Source: Vitrella brassicaformis CCMP3155 (taxonomy: Eukaryota > Protista > Chromerida). Taken from it: a stretch of 64,000 nucleotides of DNA. The stretch is taken from assembly GCA_001179505.1 (NCBI GenBank), contig CDMY01000345.1, forward strand, positions 1 through 64,000. Reading direction: 5' to 3'. Positions 1 to 50,448 of the stretch are shown here, piece by piece. Each line of letters starts with the position of its first letter. Position 1 is the stretch's first letter. The notes under the pieces are model-generated. The model searched no databases. It was not told where the DNA came from and saw nothing but the letters and a program-made list of their open reading frames with translations. The position numbers and the translations under genes were made by a program.

Positions 1-2957
1 CGCGGCCGGGTCAGCGGCTGCCCACTGCCGCCTCATCAGCGTCAGTAACCACCGTGAGGGCCCATTTGCACCGTCAGCCCCACCCGTCAGGTTCGGCCTG
101 CCTGCGCCCCACGCAGGACCGTTCCACCCCCACCTCCCCATCAGAGGACTGCCATACGTCCATTTCACCGGTCATCACAAGAAATATGCCCTTGGCTTCC
201 ACATGCCGTGGCATCACATCGCCCCCAACTCGCATCCTGAGGGCACCAGGGCCAGCAGTAATGGGCAGCAGGACCATGTGACCACTCCCAAGCTCACGGA
301 CATGTCGGCCATGCATGGTAGCATCGTTCGTAACGGCAGCAGGATCATTCCCACACCGACACTTGTGCCGCTGGGGGGTTGTGAGAAAGATGGCCTGGCG
401 CGGGGACGACTGGGCATCGTAAAGGGCAGCCACTGCGCACACAAACAGAGCCAACAGGTCAGCCAGTCAGTGGATGGATGAAGACGCAGCATCAGGGAAT
501 GTACGGTATTGTGTGGGTCATGATGCATGCAGGTTTGCAGTGCGTCACCGCCAATGGTGCCCCCCCGCATCAGGCATCTGGACCCTGCTCCAGCTCCGGG
601 GTCTCGCATGCCCCGGCTGTGTGCCGAGGAGAAGGCCCCTGCAGACAATACTATCATCACCACCACACAGATGGTTAGACAGACAGACAGACAGACAGAG
701 AGGCTGGTACGCACCCATGGCTGTGGCTGTGTGCGTGGGTGGGGTTTCTCTTTGACAGGTTGACCAACGTGTCAGCACTGAGATCGCATCCTGCCTGGTC
801 CACCCTGTCGTCCAAAGCATGAGCCGTCTCGCCAGCCGTGCGACGCAATCGCAGCATCCCCCCACCGCCCCACCGCCCATCGATCCCACCACCACTATCA
901 CCACCACCACTGCCAAGGATAAGGTCATCTTCCTCGACTTGGACGACACACTCATCCCCAGCCACTATGTGGAGTCGCTAGGCGTCCATCGGCTTCTCTG
1001 TGAGTACGTGGACAATGGCGGGGCCAGCGGCGGCCGGGCCACGTTCGGTGGGGGGCAGGGAGAGAGGGGGAGGGTGGATGAGATCATCAGGGTGTTCGAG
1101 GAGACTGGTAGGGAGGCGGCGAAGGTTGTCCAGACCTGCAAGGAGGCAGGCTGGGATCCCATCCTCATCATTAACGGCAGCCAACGATGGTCAGCTGACT
1201 GGTCCACCTTCCTCCCTGTTCATGTCTCATTCTGTCCTGCCTCTGTGTGTGTATGTGTGCAGGCTGGACGCCACTCTGCAGCCCGGGGCATTCGAGCGGC
1301 TAAGCCGCGCTCTCGCGGATAATAACGTGCCGGTGGTCAGCGCCCGCCAACGGGCGAGGGACAGGCTCATCCGCCCCCATATGGACGCCCCCACCCAGAC
1401 AAAACACGACAAGGAGGGCCACCAGGAGGTTTCGAAGGTAAACAAACGGGCCGGCACCGTAGTGAGCGTCAGTCGAGATGGATGGATGGATGGATGTCTG
1501 CAGACGATCGCTTTACTGGAGGAGGTGGGCAAGAGGCCCGGCATCACCCACGTGGCCACTGTGGGGGACAATGTGTGGGATCTCATGCCGGTGGATGAGA
1601 TCAAGAGGTGACAAGATGATGACCAAACAAACACACCTGTCTCTGCATGTCTCTCTGTCGCCTTTTCTTTTTGCAGACGGCGCCCTGACGTTTCGGCATG
1701 CAAGATACGCATGGCGCACCGACTAGGACCGACACCTTTCATCAACGTGAGCACCCCCTTACCCTCCACCCCGTTTCCCCACCATTGTTTTCATTGACTC
1801 CTCCGTGCTGTGCAGCAATTGCGCTGCCTCAACGAAGCCCTTCCAGCCATCTTATCAGCCACAGAGGAGGGACGCACCCCCACAGACCACAATTATGTCC
1901 TGGTACGCAACGCATCCCTCTCTCACAGAGAGAGAGAGAGTGAGAGAGAGCAAAGGAACGGGTTTTTCTTTCTGTTGGCTTGGGTACGTCTCGCTCTGCA
2001 GAGGCCGGTGGGTCCTGGCTCGGGTGGTGAGTTTGAGGCCCACCGAGAGGTCGATGGGGTCGCACCAGGGCACCAGGAGTATGTTGCTTGCCTACGAAAG
2101 CACCGACCAAACAGACTGGACTACACGGTGAGTACCGTACTTCTAGGTCACTCACAACCAAACCCAAGACAGACCGGCACTTAGGGCCTTTACCCCTCTG
2201 TGCACTGTGTGCTCTGTGTGTGTGTGTGTGTGCAGTGTCTCGACGAGTACATGGACCTCAACGCGCCGCCAGACCATCACCCCCTCCCCCCCACCGACCC
2301 CCACAAGCCGCCCACATGCGGGAAACTCGTCAAGAGAGCCCTCGCCACCCACACCCACAGGATGTCAAGAGGCGGGTCGGCATGGCCCATGAGGACGACC
2401 AACAATGGCGTCACAGGGAGGCCTCCATCGACAAGGCCATCGAGGCACTCATCGGCCAAGAAGGGCCTGAGAGCCTCAGCGACCAGGGCCAGCGCGGAGG
2501 CACAAAGCTTGTGGGATTGGCTGGGGCGGGGAGTGGGGGTGCCGGTGGGGGCGGGTCGGCTCACCGCCGAGTCGGCATGTCCCGTGAAGACGCCGACAGA
2601 CCCGCCGAGGCCACCAAGGTGGCGACGGGCAGTGCCGTCCGCCACCCTGGTGGCTTTGTTGCGGTGCATGTCCACCACCCGATGGTGCACATGGGCATGC
2701 AGCAGCAACGACATGCCCCAGCCACAGCCACAGCAAGGCTCGTGCCGCACAGGGGGACACTGGCCGCCGTGGGAAACAACACCAACTGGGTGAGGAAGAA
2801 AGACATACATTCCTTCCTTGATATGAATGTGTGTGTGTCTGTCTGTGTCTTCGTGTCTCCTCTGTCGCTCCCTCAGGTGACGCCTTACGTAGTGATGCGG
2901 CCCCCAGCCGGCCTGCCTGTCTGGCCGCCCTTGCCGTGCCGCACACGGGAGCCGTGA
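1..2957 (+). CDS. HAD-superfamily hydrolase-like protein, 5' end outside window, multi-exon
   Basis: Frame open from base 2; GT-AG introns 419-532 and 674-758 join in phase. Motif I KVIFLDLDDTLIPS, motif II-like LIINGSQRW, motif IV-like ATVGDNVWD. Low-complexity C-terminal exons, with an apparent 1-nt frame change near 2350-2360. Confidence 0.7.
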
Positions 2958-10584: not shown

Positions 10585-10884
10585 NNNNNNNNNNNNNNNN
10601 NNNNNNNNNNNNNNNNNNNNNNNNNNNNNNNNNNNNNNNNNNNNNNNNNNNNNNNNNNNNNNNNNNNNNNNNNNNNNNNNNNNNNNNNNNNNNNNNNNNN
10701 NNNNNNNNNNNNNNNNNNNNNNNNNNNNNNNNNNNNNNNNNNNNNNNNNNNNNNNNNNNNNNNNNNNNNNNNNNNNNNNNNNNNNNNNNNNNNNNNNNNN
10801 NNNNNNNNNNNNNNNNNNNNNNNNNNNNNNNNNNNNNNNNNNNNNNNNNNNNNNNNNNNNNNNNNNNNNNNNNNNNNNNNNNNN
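10585..10884. other. Assembly gap (300 N)
   Basis: Run of n. Confidence 1.
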
Positions 10885-20652: not shown

Positions 20653-20952
20653 NNNNNNNNNNNNNNNNNNNNNNNNNNNNNNNNNNNNNNNNNNNNNNNN
20701 NNNNNNNNNNNNNNNNNNNNNNNNNNNNNNNNNNNNNNNNNNNNNNNNNNNNNNNNNNNNNNNNNNNNNNNNNNNNNNNNNNNNNNNNNNNNNNNNNNNN
20801 NNNNNNNNNNNNNNNNNNNNNNNNNNNNNNNNNNNNNNNNNNNNNNNNNNNNNNNNNNNNNNNNNNNNNNNNNNNNNNNNNNNNNNNNNNNNNNNNNNNN
20901 NNNNNNNNNNNNNNNNNNNNNNNNNNNNNNNNNNNNNNNNNNNNNNNNNNNN
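20653..20952. other. Assembly gap (300 N)
   Basis: Run of n. Confidence 1.
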
Positions 20953-24912: not shown

Positions 24913-26116
24913 TCAATAGTAGTCGTAGTAGTCGCCTTCGTCCTCCTCGGTTTCATCCTCCCCTCCCTCAGGGGCGACAGCGGGTCGAACCGCGGACAGT
25001 GGCGGCATGACATGAGGGGCGACAGCGGGTCGAACCGCGGTCATTCCCGGAATGGCAATCCCACCTTTGGGGGGTGGTCGGTGCGGCGCTGCTGCTGGTT
25101 GACGCGTCTCGACAGCCTTCTTTTTGGTCTCGACGGCCTTCTGTGTGGTTTTCTTGGCTTTGGGCTTCTCCTCGGGCGGCTGTTTCTGTGTCTTGGGTGT
25201 GTCTTGGGGGCCCAGGTACTTGGTCAGCACGTACAGAATCTTGGGCACACTCGTGTATCTGCACACATACAGAGAGAGAGAGAGAGAGATATCTATTGGT
25301 CATGTCGACGCAGGGCAAACAAAGCAGACACCCTTTTGACCGACTGATTGACTAAGTTCTCACACACTTGATCTCGGCGATGTTTCCCGGGACGGCCTTC
25401 TTGGGTGTGCGGCCGACCGCTTCGAAGGCGTCTTGGAAGTGCTTGACGTCTTCGGCGGACGTCAGGGGGCGGCAGCGGATGTGTCCCATCTCTTTCCGCA
25501 GCTCCGTGGTGCAGGGGGGGCACTTCCTGACGTCAGTGCACTTGGCTCCGGAGTCCGGATGCCGGGCGACCTTCGCAGCCATGTGCATGCACTGACACAG
25601 AGCGTGCAGAGAGAGAGACACCGAAAATGGCGCGTGCGTGAGTGAGTGCCGCCTCTCTGCCTTGCCCACAGCTGACTGTCACACTCATTGTTGTGAGTCA
25701 CCCTTCCGGCTGTCCAGCAGCTGTTGACGCCTTGCTTGGTTTTGGCGGCCGCCCCCTTGCCCTTGGCCGCTTCAACGAGCTTCAGTGAGTAAAAGTAGCT
25801 GTAGTCGCTGTTGAAGAGCGTCTTGCACATGACCCTGCAGTCCTTTTTCTTGAACGAGCTGCCGACTCCCGTCCGCGGCGCTTTGCCCTCTTGAACGGGC
25901 CTGAAGGTTGGGACCATGATGCAGTGGCGATCTTCCAGGGGCACGGTTTTGATGGGCGCCTGAAAGTCCTTGTCGCCGCCCTTGACTCTCTTTTCTTTTG
26001 CGTCTACGCACACACAACACCTGGTAGAAACACACGCATACACCAACCGAGAGACACAGACAGACAGACAGACAGACAGAGAGAGAGACAGAGAGCAGAG
26101 AGACAGACAGAGAGAT

Positions 26117-26148
<32 letters not shown>

Positions 26149-26976
26149 CGTTCGTGTACTTCTGCGGCATGCCTGGCTCGTATCGTTTCTTCCTTACTGG
26201 GGGAATGGCTCCCCGGACTTTTTCCACACCCTGGCGGTGTCCTGCATGAGCTGGGTGGCCTTGTAGTCCGTGTACTTCATCGCCTTGATCAGATCGCTGT
26301 TGGCGGGTTCCTTAGCGGGGATTTCTTTTTGGTGCCGCTCGTTCCGCTCCTCCTCGGTCTCGGTCTCCTCCTCGGTCTCGTACCCCGGTGAGCTGGCGTC
26401 ACGGATGTGATACTCCCACCCGACGAAGTCGTCCGTATCGTCGTACTCGACCTCCGGGTCTTCGGGGGAAGAGGGGTCTCCTCTAAAGTAGAAATCCCCG
26501 GCAGCCTTGGGCTGCTTCCTGTACGGCGTCACGGGGGGCTCCTTGCCCTCGTCTTCGTCATTTTCGTATTCGCCTTCGTCGTCCGAATACTCAGCCTCAG
26601 TCTCAGTTTCAGTCTCAGTCTCAGTCTCATTGTCGTATGGGCCGTCCGTGGGCTGGTTCCAGCTGCAGAGAGCCAGAGAGCCAGACAGCGAGACAGCGAG
26701 ACAGCGAGACAGACAGACAGCCAAAGGGCAGTCGTGTCGACTTCGCGGTGGGCGAGTCTCTGTCTGTCTTGCCTGTCGTCGAAGAGGGCGCAAGAGTGGT
26801 TGGCAGACTGAGAGAGGTGACCGTCCCGCTCAAGCCTGCACACGCATGAATCAATGCAATTGCATCGATGTGGGTGTCTCTCCGACTCACTGGATGTCGT
26901 GTGCAAGAGCCAGGCTGGCCACCACCACCACCACCAGCAGCAGCAGCGGCAGCAGCGGGGCCGCTGATTTCGCCAT
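24913..26976 (-). CDS. Secreted acidic protein with novel 8-Cys domain (paralog A)
   Basis: Signal MAKSAAPLLPLLLLVVVVVASLALA, E/T/D-rich linker, DRHCIMVP..DCRVMC..NSCWTAGRC..CPPC..HIRC..LYVLT, then a K/P-rich tail ending DYYDYY*. Confidence 0.8.
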
Positions 26977-27261
26977 CAGTCCGGGAAGAAGAGAGAGTCA
27001 GAGCAACAGTGAGATCTGGTGGGTGAGGGGTGAGATGCCTCGAGCGATGTGGTCCTTAGACACTGCAGAGCAACGCCGTTTCCTCTGATCAAGCACACAT
27101 TCACGTCAGGATCTCATGAGGATTGTCGCACAGGGAGCCCAACGCAACGCACGGAAGGCGAAGCCCCCAGTCTGCATGCGCCCCCCTTCCACAGCTCGCA
27201 GTTCGGCGGGACGAGATCTCCCGTCTTCAAGTGCTTCCCGCGGACACCATCGGTGTACGGC

Positions 27262-30249
27262 GAATCAATAAGCAGAGAATCCCACAGCTCACTGACAGTT
27301 CATCTCGTCGCTCTCTCCCCGCTGTGTGTGCACGTTGCTTCAAACAGGCTGTTTCGTCCCATCCCTGACAGAATGACGGTCCGCTGCATGCCTCCCCGAG
27401 TCCATCTTGTCGCCTTCTCTCGCCTCATCTCTATGGCGTTGCTGCTTCTGCCGCTGAACACGACGCAGACTGCCGCTGCCATCGGCAGCGACAGAGCGGC
27501 GAGTGGGCTCCAGCTGATGCGCATGCGTCCGCACAGAGGGAGGGGAGGCCCTCTAGAAGCCTTCCTGCCAAGTGTGCCGAGGGAGATGCCCCTGAGGGGC
27601 TTTGGGATGCGTCGAGATGAGTCTGTGAGGGCCATCCATGCCGGCAAGAGCCGAGAGGTGAGCTGACTGGACAGATCGACGGGGATCCACGCCATTCGTA
27701 CGAACGATTCCTTCTCTGTGCTTCTGCCTGTGTGTGTTTCGTTCAGCTGCGCCATCCATCCACTCCTTCTCCATCCCTGGGCACAATCAACAGAATGCGG
27801 CCTTCAGCTGCAACAGCCAGGTACATGAATGCACACAGACGGACAGGCAGATGGGATGCCGTCCATATGTGTGTGGCTTTCAGATGGCCGTCCATGCGGC
27901 GTCACACAGCGCTGCTCTCTGCCGTCGCCACACAGGCGGAAACGGCCGGCGATTCATCGGAGGCAGTCGGCAAGCCATCGCTGGAAGGTGGGCACACGTT
28001 CATCTCCCCATTGCCGACCACGCAGCAAGACTCATCGTGTGTGGTTCGTCTGCAGGTCGCGTGGAGCTGACAGTGGATGATCTGTTGCCCACGGCTGACG
28101 TGCCGCTCCCTCGAGTGGACTTGACGACAGAGCCTGAGGTGTTCATTGGGAGCGATTATATGGACAAGGCCTATTCGCTGCTGCTGCGCGAGTACGGGAG
28201 GTATGACGATTCGAGCGCGCGAGTGATGCCAATGTCATTCGTCGGCTTCCAAGGGGCTGGCAAGACCAGGATGCTGAAAGAGCTGTCTAAGAAGCTGCGA
28301 CAGGAAGGCATCCCCGCCATCTTTATCCCTTTTGGTGACGAGACCGAGTACAACATAGACACCGAAGGCGCCTCTACGCCGTTGTTCGACTCACTCAATC
28401 TGCGGCTGGCGTGGGCGGCGGCGACCGACGAGGCGCGAGCAAGGGTCGCACGGGCAGCCAATGTGGATGTCGACAAGCTGAACTTTACGATGTGGCTCAG
28501 GCACGCATTCATCAGCGAGCGCACCGCTCGTGAGTGGCTTGACTATCACCCGTGTCTGCTGCTTATCGACGATCTTCACCGCTTTGCGACTCTGCAGGGC
28601 GACGAACGCTATGAAGCGGAGGGCAAAGTGGGCAGATACCTCAAGTGCAATTTCCTTAATCGTCGTGACCGGCATTTCGTCTTCGCTGAGCCCAACAATG
28701 CGACCACTGTCAGCGGCGATTTTCTCTCCTTCCTCGATCCAATGTTCCGGAAGTGGCGTGACCTGCTCCGACCAGAGCTGCCTTTGATCGAGGGAAAAGG
28801 ATCTGGAGCACCTTCTGGACAGCAATGTGACTCGTGGGACGATTTGCTGGGCCGGGCGATCTCCTGGACTGGTATGGGAGATGTGTCAACACGGTGGCTC
28901 TCTGGAGGCCAAAGTCGGCAACGTCAGTTGTGTCGATCCACGGAGAAGATTTGGAGCGATTGGGGTATTATGCGATTTTCTGGCTACGGCGATGGAAGGG
29001 ACCAGCGGCTCTTTTGGGCCTAATATCGGCAACTGGACGGCATTGCTGAATGTGTTTGACGAAGTGAGGACTTCTCAGATTTGGCATGGACGACTGGCGT
29101 GGCACAGAACATACTCACTGCCTCCTTGCTATCTGGCCGGTATGTGCGCTTCTCTGGCGCAATGGGACTCTCTCAAGGAGAAAGCTGGCGAGTCGTTTTG
29201 TGAGGGCCTGAATGCTGTTGCCAGCAGCCTGCGGATGCTCAATCATGCTGAGGAGGGACGCCAGTGGGTCGGGCCGTGTACAGCGGCGATGCTCATACGA
29301 TTGCTGCAAGGCGAAATAGAGAGGCTGACCCGATGGAGCCTCCGCCCCCGCGAAGCTAACGAGGTCCCACCGCAGGTCGGCAATGTGCTTCCCGGCTCTC
29401 TCGTGATACCGTTGAGCGGGGACACACAGTCGATGGGCTGCAAATTTGGCAGGTACTTGAGCTCGGAGTGGAGAAACACTGAGGATGTCATTAAGGCGTT
29501 TGTCCGAAGGAGCGGACCTCCCTCTGAAAGATCCAGATGGGATCCTGACACCGTCTTCTTCTATCAGCCCAAGCCTGATGCCTTCGAGGACAAATATGAC
29601 TTTCTTGTCTTCGTGGTGGACAAGGATGGCAAGCTGAGCGATGTGTGGGGCTACAAGTGTGTCCGCGGCGACGCCTTACCGCCAGGAGAGGACGAGCCTT
29701 TTATCGACTATGAAGATCGCCGGCAGCAGTGGATGGAAACCAATGTGTGGCCGCCTCTGCCGGGCAATCCGCTGCCGGGCGCGGCCGATCTCTTCAGTGA
29801 TCCCGATATGCGGTCGATGGAGATCAAGTCAGTGTGGCTGCGAGGGGGTGGGGGGCGGGGAGAGAAGGCATTTGTGAGGAGGCAGGAGGATGGCCATGCG
29901 TGGATTGTGCCATGTCGAGACGATGTTGATGCACTACTCGGTCTGACACTGAACAGAACCTGTTCCTTTGTACGTTCGAGTGCTTGAGGCATGTGTGTTG
30001 TGTAAGGGGATGTAGATGGACATTTGGGTGTAGACCGGTTGTGTTGTCATTTGTAGTCAAGACGGAGACTTTTCATGTGTGAGAATGTAGACGTGAGACG
30101 CCTGGATGAGAGGATGAATCGTGTTCCTCCAAATCGATAGATCTCACATCAAGGTCACCTGCTGGAGCCAATGCAACTGCAAATGCGCCTTCCCTTCGCC
30201 TCCCTCGAGGAGGAGCGATCCCGCTCAAGCTCGCGAGTGAAGAACAAGG
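27262..30249 (+). repeat. Left arm of a ~3 kb inverted duplication (partner ~36300-39520)
   Basis: Colinear reverse-complement similarity covering the whole NTPase-REase gene, its 3' flank and the ~170 bp upstream of the PPR-TGM ATG. Confidence 0.9.
27373..29987 (+). pseudogene. Crinkler/RHS-like NTPase-REase paralog CR1 (signal+transit-like leader; +1 frameshift at ~28793)
   Basis: Walker A GFQGAGKT, Walker B LLLIDDL, C-terminal FFYQP..KYDFLVFV..VWGYKC. Three leader exons precede GRVELTVDD. Extra G (GAGGGAAAAGG versus GAGGAAAAGG in paralogs); a sequencing error cannot be excluded. Confidence 0.75.
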
Positions 30250-30265
30250 ACAGGTGTCAAAAGCC

Positions 30266-32685
30266 ATGAAGAGACAACGGGACTCACAGCCCCGAGCCAA
30301 CCAGAGGCAAAAAAGACGACGCTTCGCATCCGCGTCACGTTCCGACGAGCGGCATCACCGCGGGCGTGAGCAGCAGCAGCTGATTCACATCAACCAGCAG
30401 ATCAGTGCGTGCACGCGCAAGGGGAGACTCGGAGAGGCATTCCAGGTACAGGCAGGCAGACATGAGCAAAGACAGACAGACAGATGAGTGAATCCCGAGC
30501 GCGTGTCCTTGTATGGCGTTGCAGCACTTCGCCCGGATCAGTGAGCTCAACCTGAAGCCCACGGTAGGCAACACACACGCCGGACGGACACACACAAAAG
30601 CCACCCGCCACACGCATGGGAGTGGATGAATGTGACAACTGATGCGTGAATGACGTCATTCCTTTTGCCCTTTTCCTTCAGATAGTGGCCTACTCGTCGC
30701 TCATCAACTGCTGCGTTCGGTGCGGCGAGATGCAGCGGGCGGCTCACTTGTACGAGCGCATGCAGAATCAGGACGGCATTGCCCCGAACCTGATTGTCTA
30801 CACGACCATGGTCAAGGGGTACAGCAACCAGGGAAACATGGCAGAGGCAGAGAGACTCATGGACGCCATGACGGCCGCCGGCGTGCAGCCGAACATCCGG
30901 ACGCTCTCTGCTCTGATGAGAGGCTACCTCAGGACAGGCCAGCTCGACAGAGCCCTCAAAAATGCCAAGTAAGGTGGGCACGGCCAGGGGCCAGCAGACA
31001 CACACGGACACAGACACACGGATACTGCTGTCGATCTGGGCTTCTCTCTGCGTGTATCTCCAGGCATTTGGTAGAGGCCCAATCGGCAGGACTAATCGAT
31101 GGACAGCTGGCCCCTGAGGAGCATTCCGACAGCGGCGGCGGCGGCATAGCGGCCTGCCAGTCGTCTCTCGCCGCTTTGGTGCAGCTGCTCGCGCAAGCTC
31201 ACCTCATGAGCGACGCAGAGGGCCTGGTGCAGCTGATGGGCCGTCTGGTGGACAGCAGCAGGGCCACAGCAGAGGAGGGAGCCGTCAGCATCCTCCTGGC
31301 CGAGACTTACCACAACATCGCCGTCGCACATGCGCTCTTCGGCGAGAGGAAACGGGCGAGAGACTGCATCGGCAAGGCTCGAGCACTGTCCGGCTCTTCA
31401 CCCACACCACGATCAGCAGCGGCAGCGTCAGCTACCGCCAGCCAAGGCGGCGGTCAGCAGAGGAGTCAGCAGCTCTTCTTGAAGCATCGTGGCAAGGAGC
31501 TGAGGAGAGACCTGGACCATCTCGACAACAAGCTCACCACAGAGTCCGCCGTCACGGTCACACCAGACCAGCTCTTTTCCGCTTTCCGGCGCCTTGTCTG
31601 GACAGAGGGAAATGACGACAGCACACAAGACATAATGGTGGCGGAAGAGCGCGGCACGCACTATGGCCGTCGTCTGTCGTCCTTCGGTCTCACGGACTTC
31701 CTTCGCCGCCACACTCTTCGCGAGCTGAAAGGCACCGACACGTTGTCTGTGAGGGCGTCGGAGTTCTTTCGTGTGTATGGCGGCCAGCTGAGCCGACGGC
31801 AGCACCGGTTCAGGTGGGGGAGGGTGTTCGGTGAGGGGGGCGGGCTGCCCGTGAAGGTCGAGGTGTGCAGTGGGGGCGGCGAATGGGTCACTGCAAAGGT
31901 GGGCGTTCGATCAGGAGAGAGAGAGAGAGAGATGCCCAGTTGTTTGATTGTTTGCTTCCCCCTTGTGTTGTGTGTTACAGGCGAGTTCTGAGGTCGGTGT
32001 GAGCAACTGGGTGGCCATGGAACTCAGACACGACAGGTGCTACCAGGTATGTATGCCACACACGCCCACACGCACGCACAGCAAGCGAGCCGCCCGCCTG
32101 CCTCCATCTATGTGTGTGTGTGTGTCTCTGTCTGCAGATGTTCAGCCGCGGCAGCCTGGCCGCCTTGCCCAATCTGTGCATCGTGGGGGGCGATGCGCAC
32201 GCCGCCATGGTGCGGCACTTCTCTTCCGACAGTGTGGCCGAGGTGTGGGTGACCTTCCCGCAGCCGCCTCTGTGGTCAGGGGGGTCGGGCCACCTCCTCA
32301 CAGGCGACTTCTTCAACCAAATACGGCGGTGAGCGAGCTGAGCCAAAACATCAGACACGCAATACACCCACCCAAGTGTCTGTGTGTGTGTGCGTGTGTG
32401 TGTGTCAGGGTGCTGTGTGTTGGAGGAGTGGTGACGGTCGTGTCGGACAGTCTGCCCTACTGCCACACCATCCACCAGCAGCTGAGCTCTGCCACACAGC
32501 TGGTCTCGACGCACCCACACGAGCCGTGTGTGCGCGGCTGGCCGGACGGCTATGCGCCTCTGTCTGACACTGGAGAGGGGGCTGGAGAGGGAGAGGGAGA
32601 GGGAAGTGGCAGCAGCTATTTCGATCGCTTCTGGAGCGGCGGCAAGAGGACCAGCCGATACTTTGTGCGATGGAGGAAGGAATAA
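30266..32685 (+). CDS. PPR-TGM: pentatricopeptide-repeat protein with C-terminal tRNA (guanine-N7) methyltransferase (TrmB-like) domain
   Basis: About 4 PPRs (AYSSLINCCVRCGEMQRA, VYTTMVKGYSNQGNMAEA, TLSALMRGYLRTGQLDRA). TrmB-like motifs KVEVCSGGGEW, AMELRHDR, NLCIVGGDA, VWVTFPQPP, GGVVTVVSD. Confidence 0.85.
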
Positions 32686-36864: not shown

Positions 36865-39408
36865 TCAAGCACTCGAACGTACAAAGGAACAGGTTCTGTT
36901 CAGTGCCAGACCGAGTAGTGCATCAACATCGTCTCGAGATGGCACAATCCACGCATGGCCGTCCTCCTGCCTCCTCACAAATGCCTTCTCTCCCCGCCCC
37001 CCACCCCCTCGCAGCCACACTGACTTGATCTCCATCGACCGCATATCGGGATCACTGAAGAGATCGGCCGCGCCCGGCAGCGGATTGCCCGGCAGAGGCG
37101 GCCACACATTGGTTTCCATCCACTGCTGCCGGCGATCTTTATAGTCGATAAAAGGCTCGTCCTCTCCTGGCGGTAAGGCGTCGCCGCGGACACACTTGTA
37201 GCCCCACACATCGCTCAGCTTGCCATCCTTGCCCACCACGAACAGAAAAAAGTCATACTCATCGTTGAAGGCATCAGGCTCAGGCTGATAGAAGAAGACA
37301 GTTCGAGGATCCCATGTAGATCTTTCAGAGGGAGGTCCGCTCCTTTCGACAAACGCCTTGACGACATCCTCAGTGTTTCTCCACTCCGAGCCGAAGTACC
37401 CGCCAAATTTGCAGCCCGTCGACTGTGTGTCCCCGCTCAACGGTATCACGAGAGAGCCGGGAAGCACATTGCCGACCTGCGGTGGGACCTCGTTAGCTTC
37501 GCGGGGGCGGAGGCTCCATCGGGTCAGCCTCTCTATTTCGCCTTGCAGCAATCGTATGAGCATCGCCGCTGTACACGGCCCGACCCACTGGCGTCCCTCC
37601 TNNNNNNNNNNNNNNNNNNNNNNNNNNNNNNNNNNNNNNNNNNNNNNNNNNNNNNNNNNNNNNNNNNNNNNNNNNNNNNNNNNNNNNNNNNNNNNNNNNN
37701 NNNNNNNNNNNNNNNNNNNNNNNNNNNNNNNNNNNNNNNNNNNNNNNNNNNNNNNNNNNNNNNNNNNNNNNNNNNNNNNNNNNNNNNNNNNNNNNNNNNN
37801 NNNNNNNNNNNNNNNNNNNNNNNNNNNNNNNNNNNNNNNNNNNNNNNNNNNNNNNNNNNNNNNNNNNNNNNNNNNNNNNNNNNNNNNNNNNNNNNNNNNN
37901 NCCAGGAGATCGCCCGGCCCAGCAAATCGTCCCACGAGTCACATTGCTGTCCAGAAGGTGCTCCAGATCCTTTTCCTCGATCAAAGGCAGCTCTGGCCGG
38001 AGCAGGTCACGCCACTTCCGGAACATTGGATCGAGGAAGGAGAGAAAATCGCCGCTGACAGTGGTCGCATTGTTGGGCTCAGTGAAGACGAAATGCCGGT
38101 CACAACGATGAAGGAAATCGTACTTGAGGTATCCACCCACTTTGGCATCCGCTTTAGAGCGTTCGTCGCCCTGCAGAGTTGCAAAGCGGTGAAGATCGTC
38201 GATGAGCAGCACACATGGCTGACGGTCCAGCCACTCACGCGCAGTGCGCTCGCTAATGGATGCGTGCCTGAGCCACATCGTAAAGTTCAGCTTGTCCACG
38301 TCCACATTGGCTGCCCGTGCGACCCTTGCTTGCGCCTCGTCGGTCGCCGCCGCCCACGCCAGCCGCAGATTGAGTGAGTCGAACAACGGCGTAGAGGCGC
38401 CTTCGGTGTCTATGTTGTACTCGGTCTCGTCACCAAAAGAGATAAAGACAGCGGGGATGCCTTCCTGTCGCAGCTTTTTAGACAGCTCTTTCAGCATCAG
38501 GGTCTTGCCAGCGCCTTGGAAGCCGACGAGTGACATTGGCATCACTCGCGCGCTCGAATCGTCATACCTCCCGTACTCGCGCAGCAGCAGCGAATAGGCC
38601 TTGTCCATATAATCGCTCCCAATGAACACCTCAGGCTCTGTCGTCAAGTCCACTCGAGGGAGTGGCACCTCAGCCGTGGGCAACAGATCATCCACTGTCA
38701 GCTCCACACGACCTGCAGACGAAAGTGACACACCAGACAAGATGAGTCTTCCTGCCTGGTCGTCAATGGGGAGATGAACGTGTGCCCACCTTCCAGCGAT
38801 GGCTTGCCGGCTGCCTCCGGTGAATCGCCGGCCGTTTCCGCCTGTGTGGCGACGGCAGAGAGCAGCGCTGTGCGACGTCGCATGGACGGCCATCTGAAAG
38901 CCACACACATATGGACGGCATCCCATCTGCCTGTCCGTCTGTGTGCATTCATCTACCTGGCTGTTGCAGCTGAAGGCCGCATTCTGTTGATTGGGCCCAG
39001 AGATGCAGAATGAGTGGATGGATGACGCAGCTGAACGAAACACACACACACAGGCAGAAGCACAGAGAAGGAATCGTTCATGCGAATGGCGTGGATGCCC
39101 GTCGATCTGTCCAGTCAGCTCACCTCTCGGCAAGTGCCGGCATGGATGGCCCTCACAGACTCATCTCGACGCATCCCAAAGCCCCTCAGGGGCATCTCCT
39201 TCGGCACACTTGGCAGGAAGGCTTCTAGAGGGCCTCCCCTCCCTCTGTGCGGACGCATGCGCATCAGCTGGAGCCCACTCGCCGCTCTGTCGCTGCCGAT
39301 GGCAGCGGCAGTCTGCGTCGTGTTCAGCGGCAGAAGCAGCAACGCCATAGAGATGAGGCGAGAGAAGGCGACAAGATGGACTCGGGGAGGCATGCAGCGG
39401 ACCGTCAT
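36865..39408 (-). CDS. Crinkler/RHS-like NTPase-REase paralog CR2 (signal+transit-like leader; spans an assembly gap)
   Basis: Same exon structure as CR1, GFQGAGKT, VLLIDDL, EYDFFLFV..VWGYKC. No lesion is visible outside the gap. Confidence 0.75.
37602..37901. other. Assembly gap (300 N) inside CR2
   Basis: Run of n; the equivalent stretch in CR1 is about 380 bp, so the gap size is nominal. Confidence 1.
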
Positions 39409-42111: not shown

Positions 42112-44721
42112 ATGATGGTCCGCTGCATGCCTCCCCGAGTCCATCTTGTCGCCTTCTCTCGCCTCATCTGTATGGCGTTGCTGCTTCTGCCGCTGAACAC
42201 AACGCAGGCGGCCACTGCCATCGGCAGCAACAGAGCGGCGAGTGGGCTCCAGCTGATGCGCATGCGTCCGCACAGAGGGAGGGGAGGCCCTCTAGAAGCC
42301 TTCCTGCCAAGTGTGCCGAAGGAGATGCCCCTGAGGGGCTTTGGGATGCGTCGAGATGAGTCTGTGAGGGCCATCCATGCCGGCAAGAGCCGAGAGGTGA
42401 GCTGACTGGACAGATCGACGGGGATCCACGCCATTCGAATGGTTCCTTCTCATTCAGCTGCGCCATCCATCCACTGCTTCTCCATCCCTGGGCCCAATCA
42501 ACAGAATGCGGCCTTCAGCTGCAACAGCCAGGTAGATGAATGCACACAGACGGACAGGCAGATGGGATGCCGTCCATGTGTGTGTGGCTTTCAGATGGCC
42601 GCCCATGCGGCGTCACACAGCGCTGCTCTCTGCCGTCGCCACACAGGCGGAAACGGCCGGCGATTCATCGGAGGCAGCCGGCAAGCTATCGCTGGAAGGT
42701 GGGCGAACATTCACTCACGCAAAGTTGACATAGGCAGAGACAGTCATCTTGTCTGTGTTATCACTTTTCGTCTGCAGGTCGCTTGAAGCTGACAGAGGAT
42801 GATCTGTTGCCCACGGCTGACGTGCCGCTGCCTCGAGTGGACTTGACGACAGAGCCTGAGGTGTTCATTGGGAGCGATTATGTGGACAAGGCTTATTCGC
42901 TGCTGCTGCCCGAGTACGGGAGGATGGACTCGTCGAGCGAGCGAGTGATGCCAATGTCATTCGTCGGCTTCCAAGGGGGTGGCAAGACCAGGATGCTGAA
43001 AGAGCTGTCTAAGAAGCTGCGACAGGAGAGCATCCCCGCTATCTTTATCCCTTTTGGTGACGAGACCGAGTACAACATAGACACCGAAGGCGCCTCTACG
43101 CCGTTGTTCGACTCACTCAATCTGCGGCTGGCGTGGGCGGCGGCGACCGACGAGGCGCGAGCACGGGTCGCACGGGCAGCCAATGTGGACGTGGACAAGC
43201 TGAACTTTACGATGTGGCTCAGGCACGCATCCATCAGCGAGCGCACCGCGCGTGAGTGGCTCGACCGTCAGCCATGTGTGCTGCTCATTGACGACCTGCA
43301 CCGCTTTGCGACTCTGGAGGGCGGCGAACGCTCTGAAGCCGAGGGCGAAGTGGGTGAATACCTCAAGTACGATTTCCTCAATAATTCTGACCGGCACTTC
43401 GTCTTCACTGAGCCCAACAATGCGACCACTGTCAGCCGCAAGTTTCTTCGGTTCCTCGATCCAATGTTCCAAAAGTGGCGTCACCTGCTCCGGCCAGAGC
43501 TGCCTTTGATCGAGGAAAAGGACCTCAAACACTTTCTGAACAATAATGTGACTCGTGGAACGATTTGCTGGGCCGGGCGATCTCCTGGACTAGTGTGGGA
43601 GATGCGTCAGCACGGTGGCTCTCTGGAGGCCAAAGTCGGTAACGTCTCTCGTGTCGATCGGAGAAGATTTGGAGCGATTGGGGTATTATGCGATTTTCTG
43701 GCTACGGCGATGGAAGGGACCAGCCGCTCTTCTGAGCCTAATATCGGCAACTGGACGGCATTGTTGAATGTGTTTGACGAAGTGAGGACTTCTCATATTG
43801 GGCATGGACGACTGGCGTGGCACAGAACATACTCACTGCCTCCTTGCTATCTGGCCGGTATGTGCGCTTCTCTGGCGCAATGGGACGCTTTGAAGGAGAA
43901 AGCTGGCGAGTCGTTTTGTGAAGGACTGAATGCTGTTGCCAGCAGCCTGCACATGCTCAATCATGCTGAGGAGGGACGCCAGTGGGTCGGGCCGTGTGCA
44001 ACGGCGGTGCTCATACGATTGCTGCAAGGCGAAATAGCGAAGCTAACCCACTATGGCCCCCGCGATGCTGACGAGGTCCCACCGCAGGTCGGCAACGTCC
44101 TTCTCGGTTCTCTCGTGATACCGTTGAATTACGACAAAGAGGCGATGGGCTGCAAATTATATATATATTCTTTTTGGCGGGTACTTCAGTAGCTCGGAGT
44201 GGAGAAACACTGAGGAAGTCATTAAGGCGTTTGTCGAGAGGAGCGCACCTCCATGCTCTGCACGATTCGAATGGGATCCTGACACCGTCTTCTTCTATCA
44301 GCCTGAGCCCGATGCCTTCGAGGGTATCTATGACTTTTTTGTGTTCGTGGTGGACAACGATGGCAAGCTGACCGATGTGTGGGGCTACAAGTGTGTCCGC
44401 GAAGACGTCTTACCACCAGGAGAGGACGAGCCTTTTATCGACTATAAAGATCGCCGGCAGCAATGGATGGAAACCAATGTGTGGCCGCCTCTGGCCGGGG
44501 ATCCGCTGCCGGGCGCGGCCGACCTCTTCAGTGATCCCGATATGCGGTCGATAGAGATCAAGTCAGTGTGGCTGCCAGGGGGTGGGGGGCGGGGAGAGAA
44601 GGCATTTGTGAGGAGGCAGGAGGATGGCCATGCGTGAATTGTGCCATCTCGGGACGATGTTGATGCACTACTCGGTCTGGCACTGAACCGCACATGCTCC
44701 TCTGTGCGTTGCAGTGCTTGA
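42112..44721 (+). pseudogene. Crinkler/RHS-like NTPase-REase paralog CR3, C-terminal domain disrupted
   Basis: Intact leader and NTPase (GFQGGGKT). 16-bp AT-rich insertion at ~44159-44174 causes a frameshift, and TGG>TGA creates a nonsense codon at 44635-44637. Confidence 0.8.
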
Positions 44722-48355: not shown

Positions 48356-50448
48356 CTACACCTGCATGCCTGAAGCACTCGAACGGACAAGTGAGCATGT
48401 ACGGTTAAGCGCCACGCCAAGTAAGGCATCAACATCGTCCCGAGATGGCAGAATCCACGCATGGCCATCCTCCTGCCTCCTCACAAATGCCTTCTCTCCC
48501 CGCCCCCCACCCCCTCGCAGCCACACTGACTTGATCTCCATCGACCGCATATCGGGATCGCTGAAGAGGTCGGCCGCGCCCGGCAGCGGGTTGCCGACTA
48601 GAGGCGGCCATACCTCAGTTTCCATCCACTGCTGCCGGCGATCTTTATAGTCGATGAAGGGCTCGTCCTTTCCTGGCGGTAAGGCGTCGCCGCGGACACA
48701 CTTGTAGCCCCACACATCGCTCAGCTTGCCATCGTTCTCCACCACGAAGACAAGAAAGTCATATTTGTCCTCGAAGGCTGCATCAGGCTCAGGCTGATAG
48801 AAGAAGACAGTTCGAGGATCCCATATGGATCCTTCAGAGGGAGATTCGCTCCTATCGACAAACGCCTTGACGACATCTTCAGTGCTTCTCCACTCCGAGC
48901 TGAAGTACCCGCCAAATTTGCAGCCCATCTGCTGTTTGTCGTATTTCACCGGTATCACGAGAGAACGGGGAAGAACGTTGCCGACCTGCGGTGGGACCTC
49001 GTCAGCATCGCGGGGGCCATGGTGGGTCAGCCTCTCTATTTCGCCTTGCAGCAATCGTAGGAGCACCGCCGCTGCACACGGTCCGACCCACTGGCGTCCC
49101 TCCTCAGCATGATTGAGCATCCGCAGGCTGCTGGCAACAGCATTCAGCCCCTCACAAAACGACTCGCCAGCTTCCTCCTTCAAAGCGTCCCATTGCGCCA
49201 GCCTCGTGCACATACCGGCCAGATAGCAAGGAGGCACTAAGTATGTTCTCTGCCGCGTCAGTCGTCCTGGCCGTTTATATGAGGTCCTTTCTTCGTCAAA
49301 CACATTCAAGAGTGCCGTCCAGTTGCCGATGTCAGGAACTGACCAGCCGAAGGTCGCTTCTCCTTCCATAGCCGTAGCCAGAAAATCGCATAATACCTCA
49401 ATCGCTCCAAATATAATCGATGGATTGACACGAGAGACGTTGCCGACTTTGGCCTCCAGAGAGCCACCGTGCTGACGCATTTCCCACACTAGTCCAGGAG
49501 ATCGCCCGGCCCAGCAAATCGTTCCACGAGTCACATTGCTGTCCAGAAGGTGCTCCAGATCCTTTTCCTCGATCAAAGGCAGCTCTGGCCGAAGCAGGTC
49601 ACGCCACTTCCGGAACATTGGATCGAGGAAGGAAAGAAAATCGCCGCTGACAGTGGTCGCATTGTTGCGCTCAGTAAAGACGAAGTGCCGGTCACGACGA
49701 TTAAGGAAATTGCACTTGAGGTATTCACCCACTTCGCCCTCGGCTTTACAGCGCTCGCCGCCCTCCAGAGTCGCAAAGCGGTGAAGATCGTCGATAAGCA
49801 GCAGACACGAACGATAGCCAAGCCACTCACGCGCGGTGCGTTTGCTGATGGATGCGTGCCTGAGCCACATCGTAAAGTTCAGCTTGTCGACGTCCACATT
49901 GGCTGCCCGTGCGACCCTTGCTCGCGCCTCGTCGGTCGCCGCCGCCCACGCCAGCCGCAGATTGAGTGAGTCGAACAACGGCGTAGAGGCGCCTTCGGTG
50001 TCTAAGTGATACTCGGTCTCGTCACCAAAAGAGATGAAGATGGCGGGGATGCCCTCATGCCGCAGCTTCTTGGACAGCTCTTTCAGCATCCTGGTCTTGC
50101 CAGCCCCTTGGAAGCCGACAAATGACATTGGCATCACTCGCGAGCTCGACGAGTCCATCCTCCCGTACTCGCGCAGCAGCAGCGAATAGGCCTTCTCGAC
50201 ATAGTCGCTCCCAATGAACACCTCAGGCTCTGTCGTCAAGTCCACTCGAGGGAGCGGCACGTCAGCAGTGGGCAACAGATCATCCACTGTCAGCTCCACG
50301 CGACCTGCAGACGAAAGTGACACACCAGACAAGATGAATCTGCTGCCTGGTCGTCAATGGGGAGATGAACGTGTCACGAACCGTCTGCTTCTTGTGGCCT
50401 TTTGTGTGCCTGCTGGTCTTGTGTCTCGAACTCCTGTGGCCTCTTCAT
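48356..50448 (-). CDS. Crinkler/RHS-like NTPase-REase paralog CR4 (intact; short basic header exon)
   Basis: Uninterrupted ORF 48356-50332. Upstream exon ATG 50448 encodes MKRPQEFETQDQQAHKRPQEAD-G, with a phase-1 GT donor at 50381 joining GRVELTVDD. Confidence 0.8.

Follow-up and report, generated by a model that had tools for sequence, protein, structure and literature searches.

Introduction

Where does an alga send a Crinkler-like protein whose header has been exchanged for a signal-like leader? The question is raised by contig CDMY01000345.1 of Vitrella brassicaformis CCMP3155 (109,775 bp), of which positions 1–64,000 were analyzed (64,000 nucleotides, hereafter the window). Three gene copies in the window, CR1, CR2 and CR3, encode a leader of three exons ahead of a body that appears to combine a P-loop nucleoside triphosphatase (NTPase) with a restriction-endonuclease-like (REase-like) domain. 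An earlier note on this DNA, made from the sequence alone, had proposed that the leader directs an effector to the plastid. The leader exons prove to be expressed as part of the gene, their product very probably enters the endoplasmic reticulum (ER), and the plastid is the destination that we tentatively favor.

A Transcribed Leader Spliced onto the NTPase Exon

The CR1 leader comprises 154 residues encoded by three exons at 27373–27987 on the forward strand, which are in frame (phases 0, 2 and 1) with the NTPase exon beginning at 28056 (Table 1). Its translation includes the hydrophobic segment VHLVAFSRLISMALLLLPL..AAA, the AFLPS motif and the ending RRHTALLSAVAT, all three of which the earlier note had picked out. 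Copies CR1, CR2 and CR3 are 93–97% identical in the leader. Their introns display five or more indel events; all indels between copies are intronic or upstream, with none among 463 coding bases, and the reading frame is open and indel-free in all three copies.

Among the public read runs examined, X1 and X7, which come from two different studies, behave as RNA, and X3 and X4 as DNA. Transcripts contain the leader exons, joined by splicing to the NTPase exon: contigs from X1 and X7 contain GT..AG joints that excise exactly the three introns 27658–27746, 27821–27883 and 27988–28055, and a single 397-nt X7 contig runs through exons 1 to 4. In X3 and X4, the introns are covered and joints are absent. 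The proposed three exons of about 150 residues are thereby confirmed in coordinates, frame and splice joints. The X7 contig has CR2-type letters at 27957 and 27967, where the X1 contig is CR1-like, so the leader form is expressed from at least two copies. Transcripts beginning 3′ of the leader exons were looked for in the reads and not observed, although minor isoforms are possible.

Read depth in X1 and X7 is zero over 27204–27337 and rises from the bin 27338–27471 onward, which suggests, but does not prove, a transcription start upstream of 27373. If transcription does start there, 27373 is the first AUG and translation would begin at M1; no ATG is present in any frame within 27200–27372. 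The public models P0005, P0007 and P0003 begin at the second in-frame Met, M21 (27433). The base at −3 is A for the ATG at 27373 and T for that at 27433, and the N-terminus is hydrophobic with either start. An exact-pattern scan of metagenome and metatranscriptome contigs with exon 1 returned no match, and the contig encoding the paralogue P0004 begins at the gene edge.

A Probable Signal Peptide Followed by a Basic Extension

Numbered from M1, the leader opens with a basic segment (residues 1–17, with R4, R9, H11 and R17), continues with an 11-residue hydrophobic core (residues 18–28, LISMALLLLPL; Kyte–Doolittle mean 2.6) and reaches an 8-residue polar c-region (residues 29–36, NTTQTAAA) that closes in AxA. 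Exon 1 of CR1 encodes this whole arrangement (R4/R9/R17, core L18–L28, A34–A36) together with a basic stretch containing RGRGGPLEA↓FLPSVP, where the arrow marks a boundary that is discussed below. The N-flank of the core is more positive than the C-flank, which favors translocation of the C-terminal side. Small residues occupy −3 and −1 of the predicted cleavage site in every copy (A34-A35-A36↓I37 in CR1 and CR2, A34-T35-A36↓I37 in CR3), and positions −5 to −1 score 3.55 on the Vitrella matrix introduced below. Taken together, these features argue that the protein very probably enters the ER co-translationally via a cleavable signal peptide of residues 1–36. The estimate stands for M1 or M21 because the classical signal features are present with either start.

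The following 118 residues contain 19 Arg/Lys and 10 Asp/Glu and carry a net charge of +9, positive as in a presequence; the maximum for any 118-residue window of the body is +5. Their composition is 14% Arg, 17% Ser+Thr, 12% Ala and 9% Pro, and the first 22 residues after AxA hold five basic residues and one acidic (net +4). The R/S/P-rich stretch described previously thus corresponds to a transcribed, basic, R/S/A/P-rich extension. Its description as acid-poor holds relative to the body (10 Asp/Glu in 118 residues, or 8.5%, vs 97 in 648, or 15%) but fails for the last 25 leader residues, which are net acidic.

A Leader without Detectable Relatives

Sequence searches used residues 21–154 of the leader as represented in P0005, with residues 1–20 analyzed within the exon-1 translation. 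An exhaustive phmmer search of 1.84 billion representatives with residues 21–154 (P0005:1–134) retrieved only the leader's own cluster, and word-based protein searches with the leader retrieved only P0005 (CR1) and P0003 (CR3). The donor plastid-protein gene that had been anticipated was accordingly not found at detectable similarity by either route. The idea that the leader replaces the usual Crinkler header fared better: Pfam searches up to an E value of 10, including the Crinkler header family PF20147, gave no hit on the leader, and neither did NCBIfam or PADLOC. Rfam had no match in 26000–31000, and sequence and profile searches of the PDB gave no significant hit. AlphaFold2 models of the leader with the NTPase and, separately, of the C-terminal domain, built on shallow alignments, had a predicted local distance difference test score (pLDDT) of 34 and were unusable; this value is uninformative about disorder in the leader because the NTPase domain is equally poor. 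No paper linking Vitrella with Crinkler proteins, or citing the accessions, was found in the literature.

A ubiquitin-like header, in which the hydrophobic stretch would be strand 1 and LEAFLPS the equivalent of LxLFLAK, was considered and rejected on two grounds, the absent PF20147 signal and the low-complexity sequence between the hydrophobic stretch and LEAFLPS.

Plastid Import Weighed against Secretion

Vitrella is a chromerid with a four-membrane red-type plastid, and its nucleus-encoded plastid proteins use a signal peptide followed directly by a transit peptide (PMC6668581). Under a plastid reading, the three exons would encode an address at the N-terminus of a P-loop NTPase that is Crinkler/RHS-like, specific to Vitrella and equipped with a REase-like domain. 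Residues 1–36 would act as a cleavable ER signal peptide, bringing the protein into the ER during translation, and the following 118 residues would act as a transit-peptide-like presequence that carries it from the ER to the plastid. The destination would be the stroma, or the periplastidial space only, given Ile at +1. Once inside, the NTPase–nuclease body could meet organellar nucleic acid.

Fussy et al. 2019 (PMC6668581) published an ASAFind matrix specific to Vitrella, and transit scores were computed with it over positions +1 to +20, for which the cut-off is 1.0. In this ASAFind comparison, which had been suggested for the leader, the A36↓I37 site scores 1.36; the value lies above the published cut-off, but non-plastid references overlap it. 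The position-specific log-odds at the site, −2.5 bits, exceeds that of 92% of body windows (mean −10.4). The 25-column total ASAFind score is 4.91 and is dominated by Ala at −1 and −3; many leader positions reach 4.7–5.6. Because 5.2% of leader shuffles attain its best total score, the arrangement of residues adds little over composition.

An internal window, A63↓F64LPSVP, gives a transit score of 2.62. Within the part of the reference table that was used, this range is occupied by plastid references only, the top non-plastid scores being 1.59 ('other') and 1.63 (mitochondrial). Among five Vitrella plastid reference leaders taken from the supplement of PMC6668581, three have A↓F at 13–21 residues past the core, and in two of those it follows RGG, as in the RGRGGPLEA↓F of the CR leader. 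These examples hint, anecdotally, that Vitrella may tolerate a spacer ahead of the Phe motif. Phe at +1 is only weakly conserved in Vitrella plastid proteins (PMC6668581, Fussy et al. 2019), with a frequency of about 0.52 in the Vitrella reference matrix (PMC6668581).

Likenesses to individual references were observed. The leaders of CPOX (..LPRGGAFAAPTPS..) and LUT5 (..ERRGGAAFIFRPSSS..) resemble HRGRGGPLEAFLPSVP at residues 55–68 of the CR leader (PMC6668581 Table S1), and the pentapeptide RRHTA is common to the argAB reference leader and exon 3 (residues 124–128). This may be due to chance, the probability of which is about 0.02–0.1 by rough estimate.

Several observations count against a plastid destination. 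The score of 1.36 exceeds about 24 of the 177 signal-peptide-positive plastid references (~14th percentile), and 3 of 15 'other' and 4 of 7 mitochondrial references with non-zero scores lie above it, as counted in the part of the reference table used; the transit score at the signal-peptide site is non-discriminating, with a likelihood ratio of about 1. Body windows have a mean of 1.13 ± 0.26 by the same score and reach 2.18, and 99% of the sequences generated from the plastid model have a higher log-odds than the site (their mean is +9.1). Residue +1 is Ile, which is neither Phe nor one of the alternatives Trp, Tyr and Leu. F64 would not be exposable by signal peptidase because it lies 35 residues beyond the hydrophobic core. 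The presequence is long (118 residues) and contains 10 acidic residues. Amino-acid constraint on the leader is unsupported, since its ratio of nonsynonymous to synonymous divergence (pN/pS) is about 1–2 on few substitutions (13–20 per pair; body 0.41–0.56). The transcript start is resolved only to a 134-base bin (27338–27471). Finally, Crinkler-type proteins are generally regarded as delivered toxins rather than organelle enzymes. Of the resemblance to red-plastid leaders claimed in the earlier note, what survives is the signal-like segment with its basic tail; the score at the site overlaps that of non-plastid proteins, and the Ile at +1 speaks against it.

The foremost competitor is a classical secretory leader. 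The protein would enter the ER and from there leave the cell, or be kept in extrusive or apical secretory organelles for use as a toxin on other cells, or be retained elsewhere in the endomembrane system, with the 118-residue basic stretch serving as a disordered linker or pro-region. This alternative draws on the same signal-peptide evidence as plastid import and gains from the overlap of the transit score with non-plastid signal-peptide proteins, from the non-Phe residue at +1, from a leader pN/pS near 1 and from a body whose nearest relatives are of the Crinkler/RHS type, regarded as delivered effectors. It has to contend with a long net +9 extension placed right behind the signal peptide, which has the look of a plastid presequence in this lineage, and with the A↓FLPSVP window, whose score falls in the plastid-only range of the references compared. 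PEXEL, TEXEL, LxLFLAK and HVLVxxP motifs were not seen by eye in the 154-residue leader. CR proteins, moreover, are almost devoid of hydrophobic secretion-type headers according to Zhang et al., as summarized in PMC5289972. On balance, secretion is a possible, if somewhat doubtful, account of the leader.

The sequence tests are unable to separate plastid import from ordinary secretion, and the preference for the plastid comes from weighing several considerations. In its favor count the basic extension, the internal A↓F-P/S window and the diatom precedent, in which predictions assign about 60% of signal-peptide proteins to the plastid; against it count Ile at +1, the acidic content of the extension and the kind of cargo. 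The ASAFind score at the predicted cleavage site was taken as neutral. We place the probability that the leader sends the body to the plastid, periplastidial space included, at roughly 0.4.

Header Exchange and the Age of the Cassette

The leader is absent from CR4 (public protein P0001) and from a fifth paralogue, P0002, at 82–84 kb of the same contig. The first exon of both encodes MKRPQE..HKRPQEA and ends in the same phase as leader exon 3. In an alignment, the intron after this KRP exon (CR4, P0002) is homologous to intron 3 of CR1–CR3 from about its eighth base, while the exons upstream of the shared intron are unrelated between CR1–CR3 and CR4/P0002. Because unrelated header exons precede a homologous intron, the address behaves as an exchangeable exon cassette with its boundary at intron 3. 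A third header, short and acidic (MSSSHDDSRPPG), is found in P0008, a paralogue on another contig of 57 kb. One body family thus carries three header types (compared at window 50382–50448, L002:10001–10170 and P0008), of which the leader and KRP types share the downstream intron.

Synonymous divergence between copies is three- to fivefold lower in the leader (0.016–0.044) than in the NTPase exon and body (0.09–0.16). The low-divergence stretch covers 27262–27987, that is, the cassette and about 110 bp upstream, in comparison with 28058–28789. This pattern points to a leader cassette that is younger than the bodies or has been homogenized by gene conversion.

A broader scheme, which we regard as unlikely, would have one body re-addressed by first-exon cassettes, the leader directing it to the plastid and KRP..KRP to the nucleus, next to the third short acidic header. 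Such a family would police or manipulate DNA in two genome-bearing compartments.

Remaining Alternatives

The leader might instead have little or no targeting function and represent a young, neutral 5′ cassette spread by duplication or gene conversion, with translation starting elsewhere or the copies decaying. A leader pN/pS of 1.0–2.0 is what such a cassette would display, its low synonymous divergence marks it as younger or homogenized, and a homologue was found nowhere; as assembled, the bodies of CR1 and CR3 are also broken by frame changes, and a 300-N gap interrupts CR2. This explanation is decidedly improbable, since the open reading frame (ORF) persists across 154 codons in 3 of 3 copies with indels confined to introns, splicing of the transcripts is correct, none of the four read sets has the CR1 frame break, which is probably an assembly error, and the chance is small that a random open 5′ extension would begin with a signal-like core and AxA.

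An uncleaved type II signal anchor would place residues 10–28 in the membrane, with the basic N-terminus cytosolic and the body lumenal on a 118-residue stem. The 19-residue window 10–28 has a Kyte–Doolittle mean of 1.94, compared with the usual transmembrane threshold of 1.6, and the architecture of the leader resembles that of Golgi type II proteins, which consist of a short tail, a hydrophobic segment and a low-complexity stem. R17 breaks the segment, leaving an unbroken core of 11 residues followed by a good AxA site, and with a start at M21 the segment would be far too short to cross a membrane; a signal anchor is therefore very improbable.

Least probable of all is a mitochondrial or dual-organelle presequence whose Arg-rich N-terminus is read by the mitochondrial import machinery: the first acidic residue is D40 (39 acid-free residues), several Arg lie in the first 17, the extension is basic overall and, in the part of the reference table used, seven Vitrella mitochondrial references have non-zero ASAFind scores, indicating overlapping signals. 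Over the first 30 residues, however, the helical hydrophobic moment does not exceed 0.32, a low value that disfavors an amphipathic presequence of the mitochondrial type, and signal peptides typically have such a Leu-rich core ahead of an AxA site.

The NTPase Body and Its Possible Crinkler Kinship

CR4, whose gene is intact, stood in for the family body. Every copy retains the Walker A (GFQGAGKT) and Walker B (LLLIDD) motifs of P-loop NTPases, and AAA_16 and AAA_22 hits on the body are weak (E values 3e-5 to 4e-3), all below the gathering thresholds. In the ESM Atlas, the nearest body clusters are uncharacterized ones from Mucoromycota and Rhodophyta (feature score 0.98–0.99), the Mucoromycota cluster aligning at template-modeling (TM) scores of 0.63/0.79; a PF20147 Crinkler cluster follows at a feature score of 0.94. 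More distant structural neighbors are STAND NTPases (TM ~0.42).

For the C-terminal 230 residues, structural neighbors of the Atlas model include PDDEXK_2, PDDEXK_4, PDDEXK_7 and DUF2130 at TM 0.35–0.49, and feature neighbors include an Oomycota cluster (0.87) and a kinetoplastid RHSP cluster (0.84). The domain has no Pfam or PDB sequence hit, and its candidate motif, YDF..DVWGYK, is not the canonical D..(D/E)xK. A Crinkler/RHS-like NTPase joined to a REase-like domain is thus a lead rather than a demonstrated membership, and nuclease activity is a prediction drawn from weak structural neighbors. The body type named in the earlier note, a Crinkler-type NTPase/nuclease, is consistent with the Crinkler/RHS-type relatives among the Atlas leads; its nuclease part depends on those weak neighbors.

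P0004, another Vitrella paralogue, groups with P0008 in one 90% cluster and is encoded on a 2.3-kb JGI contig. A second ORF downstream on that contig (L001:1472–1984) has a DNA-binding SAP domain (PF02037) and sits where the REase-like end would be expected.

Organization and Assembly of the Locus

The public proteins P0001, P0003, P0005 and P0007 were mapped onto the contig, and the coordinates of the leader copies and related features are collected in Table 1.

Table 1. Coordinates of leader, body and header features within the window
Feature	Position	Strand	Remarks
CR1 leader exon 1	27373..27657	+	ATG start, 95 codons; RNA-like contigs cover the exon and splice from 27657
CR1 intron 1	27658..27746	+	GT..AG; joint 27655>27745 (cut +2) in X1, X7; inter-copy indels located here
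CR1 leader exon 2 (LRHPSTPSPSLGTINRMRPSAATA)	27747..27820	+	
CR1 intron 2	27821..27883	+	GT..AG; joint 27817>27881 (cut +3) in X1, X7
CR1 leader exon 3 (WPSMRRHTALLSAVATQAETAGDSSEAVGKPSLE)	27884..27987	+	ends in phase 1
CR1 intron 3	27988..28055	+	joint 27985>28054 (cut +2) in X1, X7
CR1 body	28056..29999	+	putative P-loop NTPase, helical middle, REase-like C-terminal domain; window frame shifts near 28792–28798
CR2 leader copy	38790..39408	-	exon 1 39124–39408, exon 2 38957–39030, exon 3 38790–38893
CR3 leader copy	42112..42698	+	exon 1 42112–42396, exon 2 42458–42531, exon 3 42595–42698; public model P0003
CR4 alternative header exon (MKRPQEFETQDQQAHKRPQEAD)	50382..50448	-	phase 1; replaces the leader ahead of the shared intron

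At 28792, one base of the window is missing in all four read sets, DNA-like and RNA-like. This extra base places the CR1 body in two frames (28055–28798 and 28794–29999), and the public model P0005 ends out of frame because of it. The CR1 frame break is likely an assembly error in an A/G run and not a real pseudogene. All four read sets also differ from the window at 28771 (G in the reads, A in the window) and at 27581 (A in the reads, G in the window). The latter change converts R70 to K, as in CR2 and CR3; the CR1-specific G is either an assembly variant or the contigs collapsed paralogues. The CR3 body has a frame shift near 44173–44180. In CR2, the 300-N assembly gap lies at 37602–37901, and other 300-N gaps in the window occur at 10585–10884 and 20653–20952. 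CR4 (48359–50305) is the sole copy that the assembly presents as a single unbroken ORF.

Between the inverted CR1 and CR2, an ORF at 30646–30972 (+) is pentatricopeptide-repeat-like (..YTTMVKGYSNQGNMAEAERLMDAM..). Pentatricopeptide repeats are typical of organelle RNA-binding proteins.

Significance and Comparison with Known Systems

The headers of Crinkler/RHS NTPase–nucleases, which are known as delivered toxins, are ubiquitin-like or helical, and it is unusual for a body of this kind to carry a leader of the signal-peptide or plastid type. Were the plastid reading correct, a conflict-derived nuclease would act on an organelle genome, and would do so in the phototroph most closely related to apicomplexan parasites, the first such module inside a secondary plastid of the apicomplexan lineage, and the effector module would be re-addressable by exchange of a first-exon cassette at a conserved intron. 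An A↓F site so far behind the signal peptide would further raise the question of how Vitrella reads its import signal. Were the protein secreted instead, this free-living alga would provide a rare case of a classical signal peptide on a Crinkler-type protein, with a bearing on how such toxins are delivered.

Compared with the bipartite sequences of chromerids and apicomplexans (PMC6668581 set), the leader shares a hydrophobic signal with Ala at −1 and −3, an extension that is basic, hydroxylated and Pro-containing and has neither fold nor conservation, and a transit score over the published cut-off. With the Vitrella CPOX and LUT5 leaders, both among the references sampled, it shares an internal RGG..A↓F-P/S motif. 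It differs in having Ile rather than Phe at +1, with the high-scoring A↓F 35 residues past the core, and its extension is longer (118 residues) and more acidic (10 acidic residues) than those of the five reference leaders compared. Unlike bipartite cargo, the CR body is not a metabolic or housekeeping plastid protein.

Oomycete CRN effectors and the wider Crinkler-RHS (CR) class (Zhang et al. 2016, as summarized in PMC5289972) provide a parallel in modular architecture: a header at the N-terminus precedes a P-loop NTPase, a helical portion and a domain that in Vitrella is putatively REase-like. In that summary, as in Vitrella, headers are swapped at a fixed junction and the genes form multi-copy clusters; the language-model and structure neighbors of the Vitrella body likewise lie in Mucoromycota, Rhodophyta, Oomycota and the PF20147 Crinkler cluster. 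In contrast to that class, the Vitrella leader is neither a ubiquitin-like nor a helical header and has no PF20147 hit. Its LEAFLPS fits three of the five fixed positions of the oomycete CRN motif LxLFLAK, and HVLVxxP is absent. In Vitrella the header junction coincides with an intron and the host is a phototroph, free-living or associated with corals; the searches made yielded no sequence-level homology between the body and any named CR protein.

A more remote likeness is to STAND/AAA_16 NTPases with effector domains (NB-ARC, bacterial AfsR/SARP-like ATPases), with which the body shares Walker A and B motifs, weak AAA_16/AAA_22 hits and a TM score of about 0.42. Unlike STAND NTPases, the Vitrella body lacks a repeat sensor domain, carries its effector-like domain at the C-terminus and has Pfam hits below threshold.

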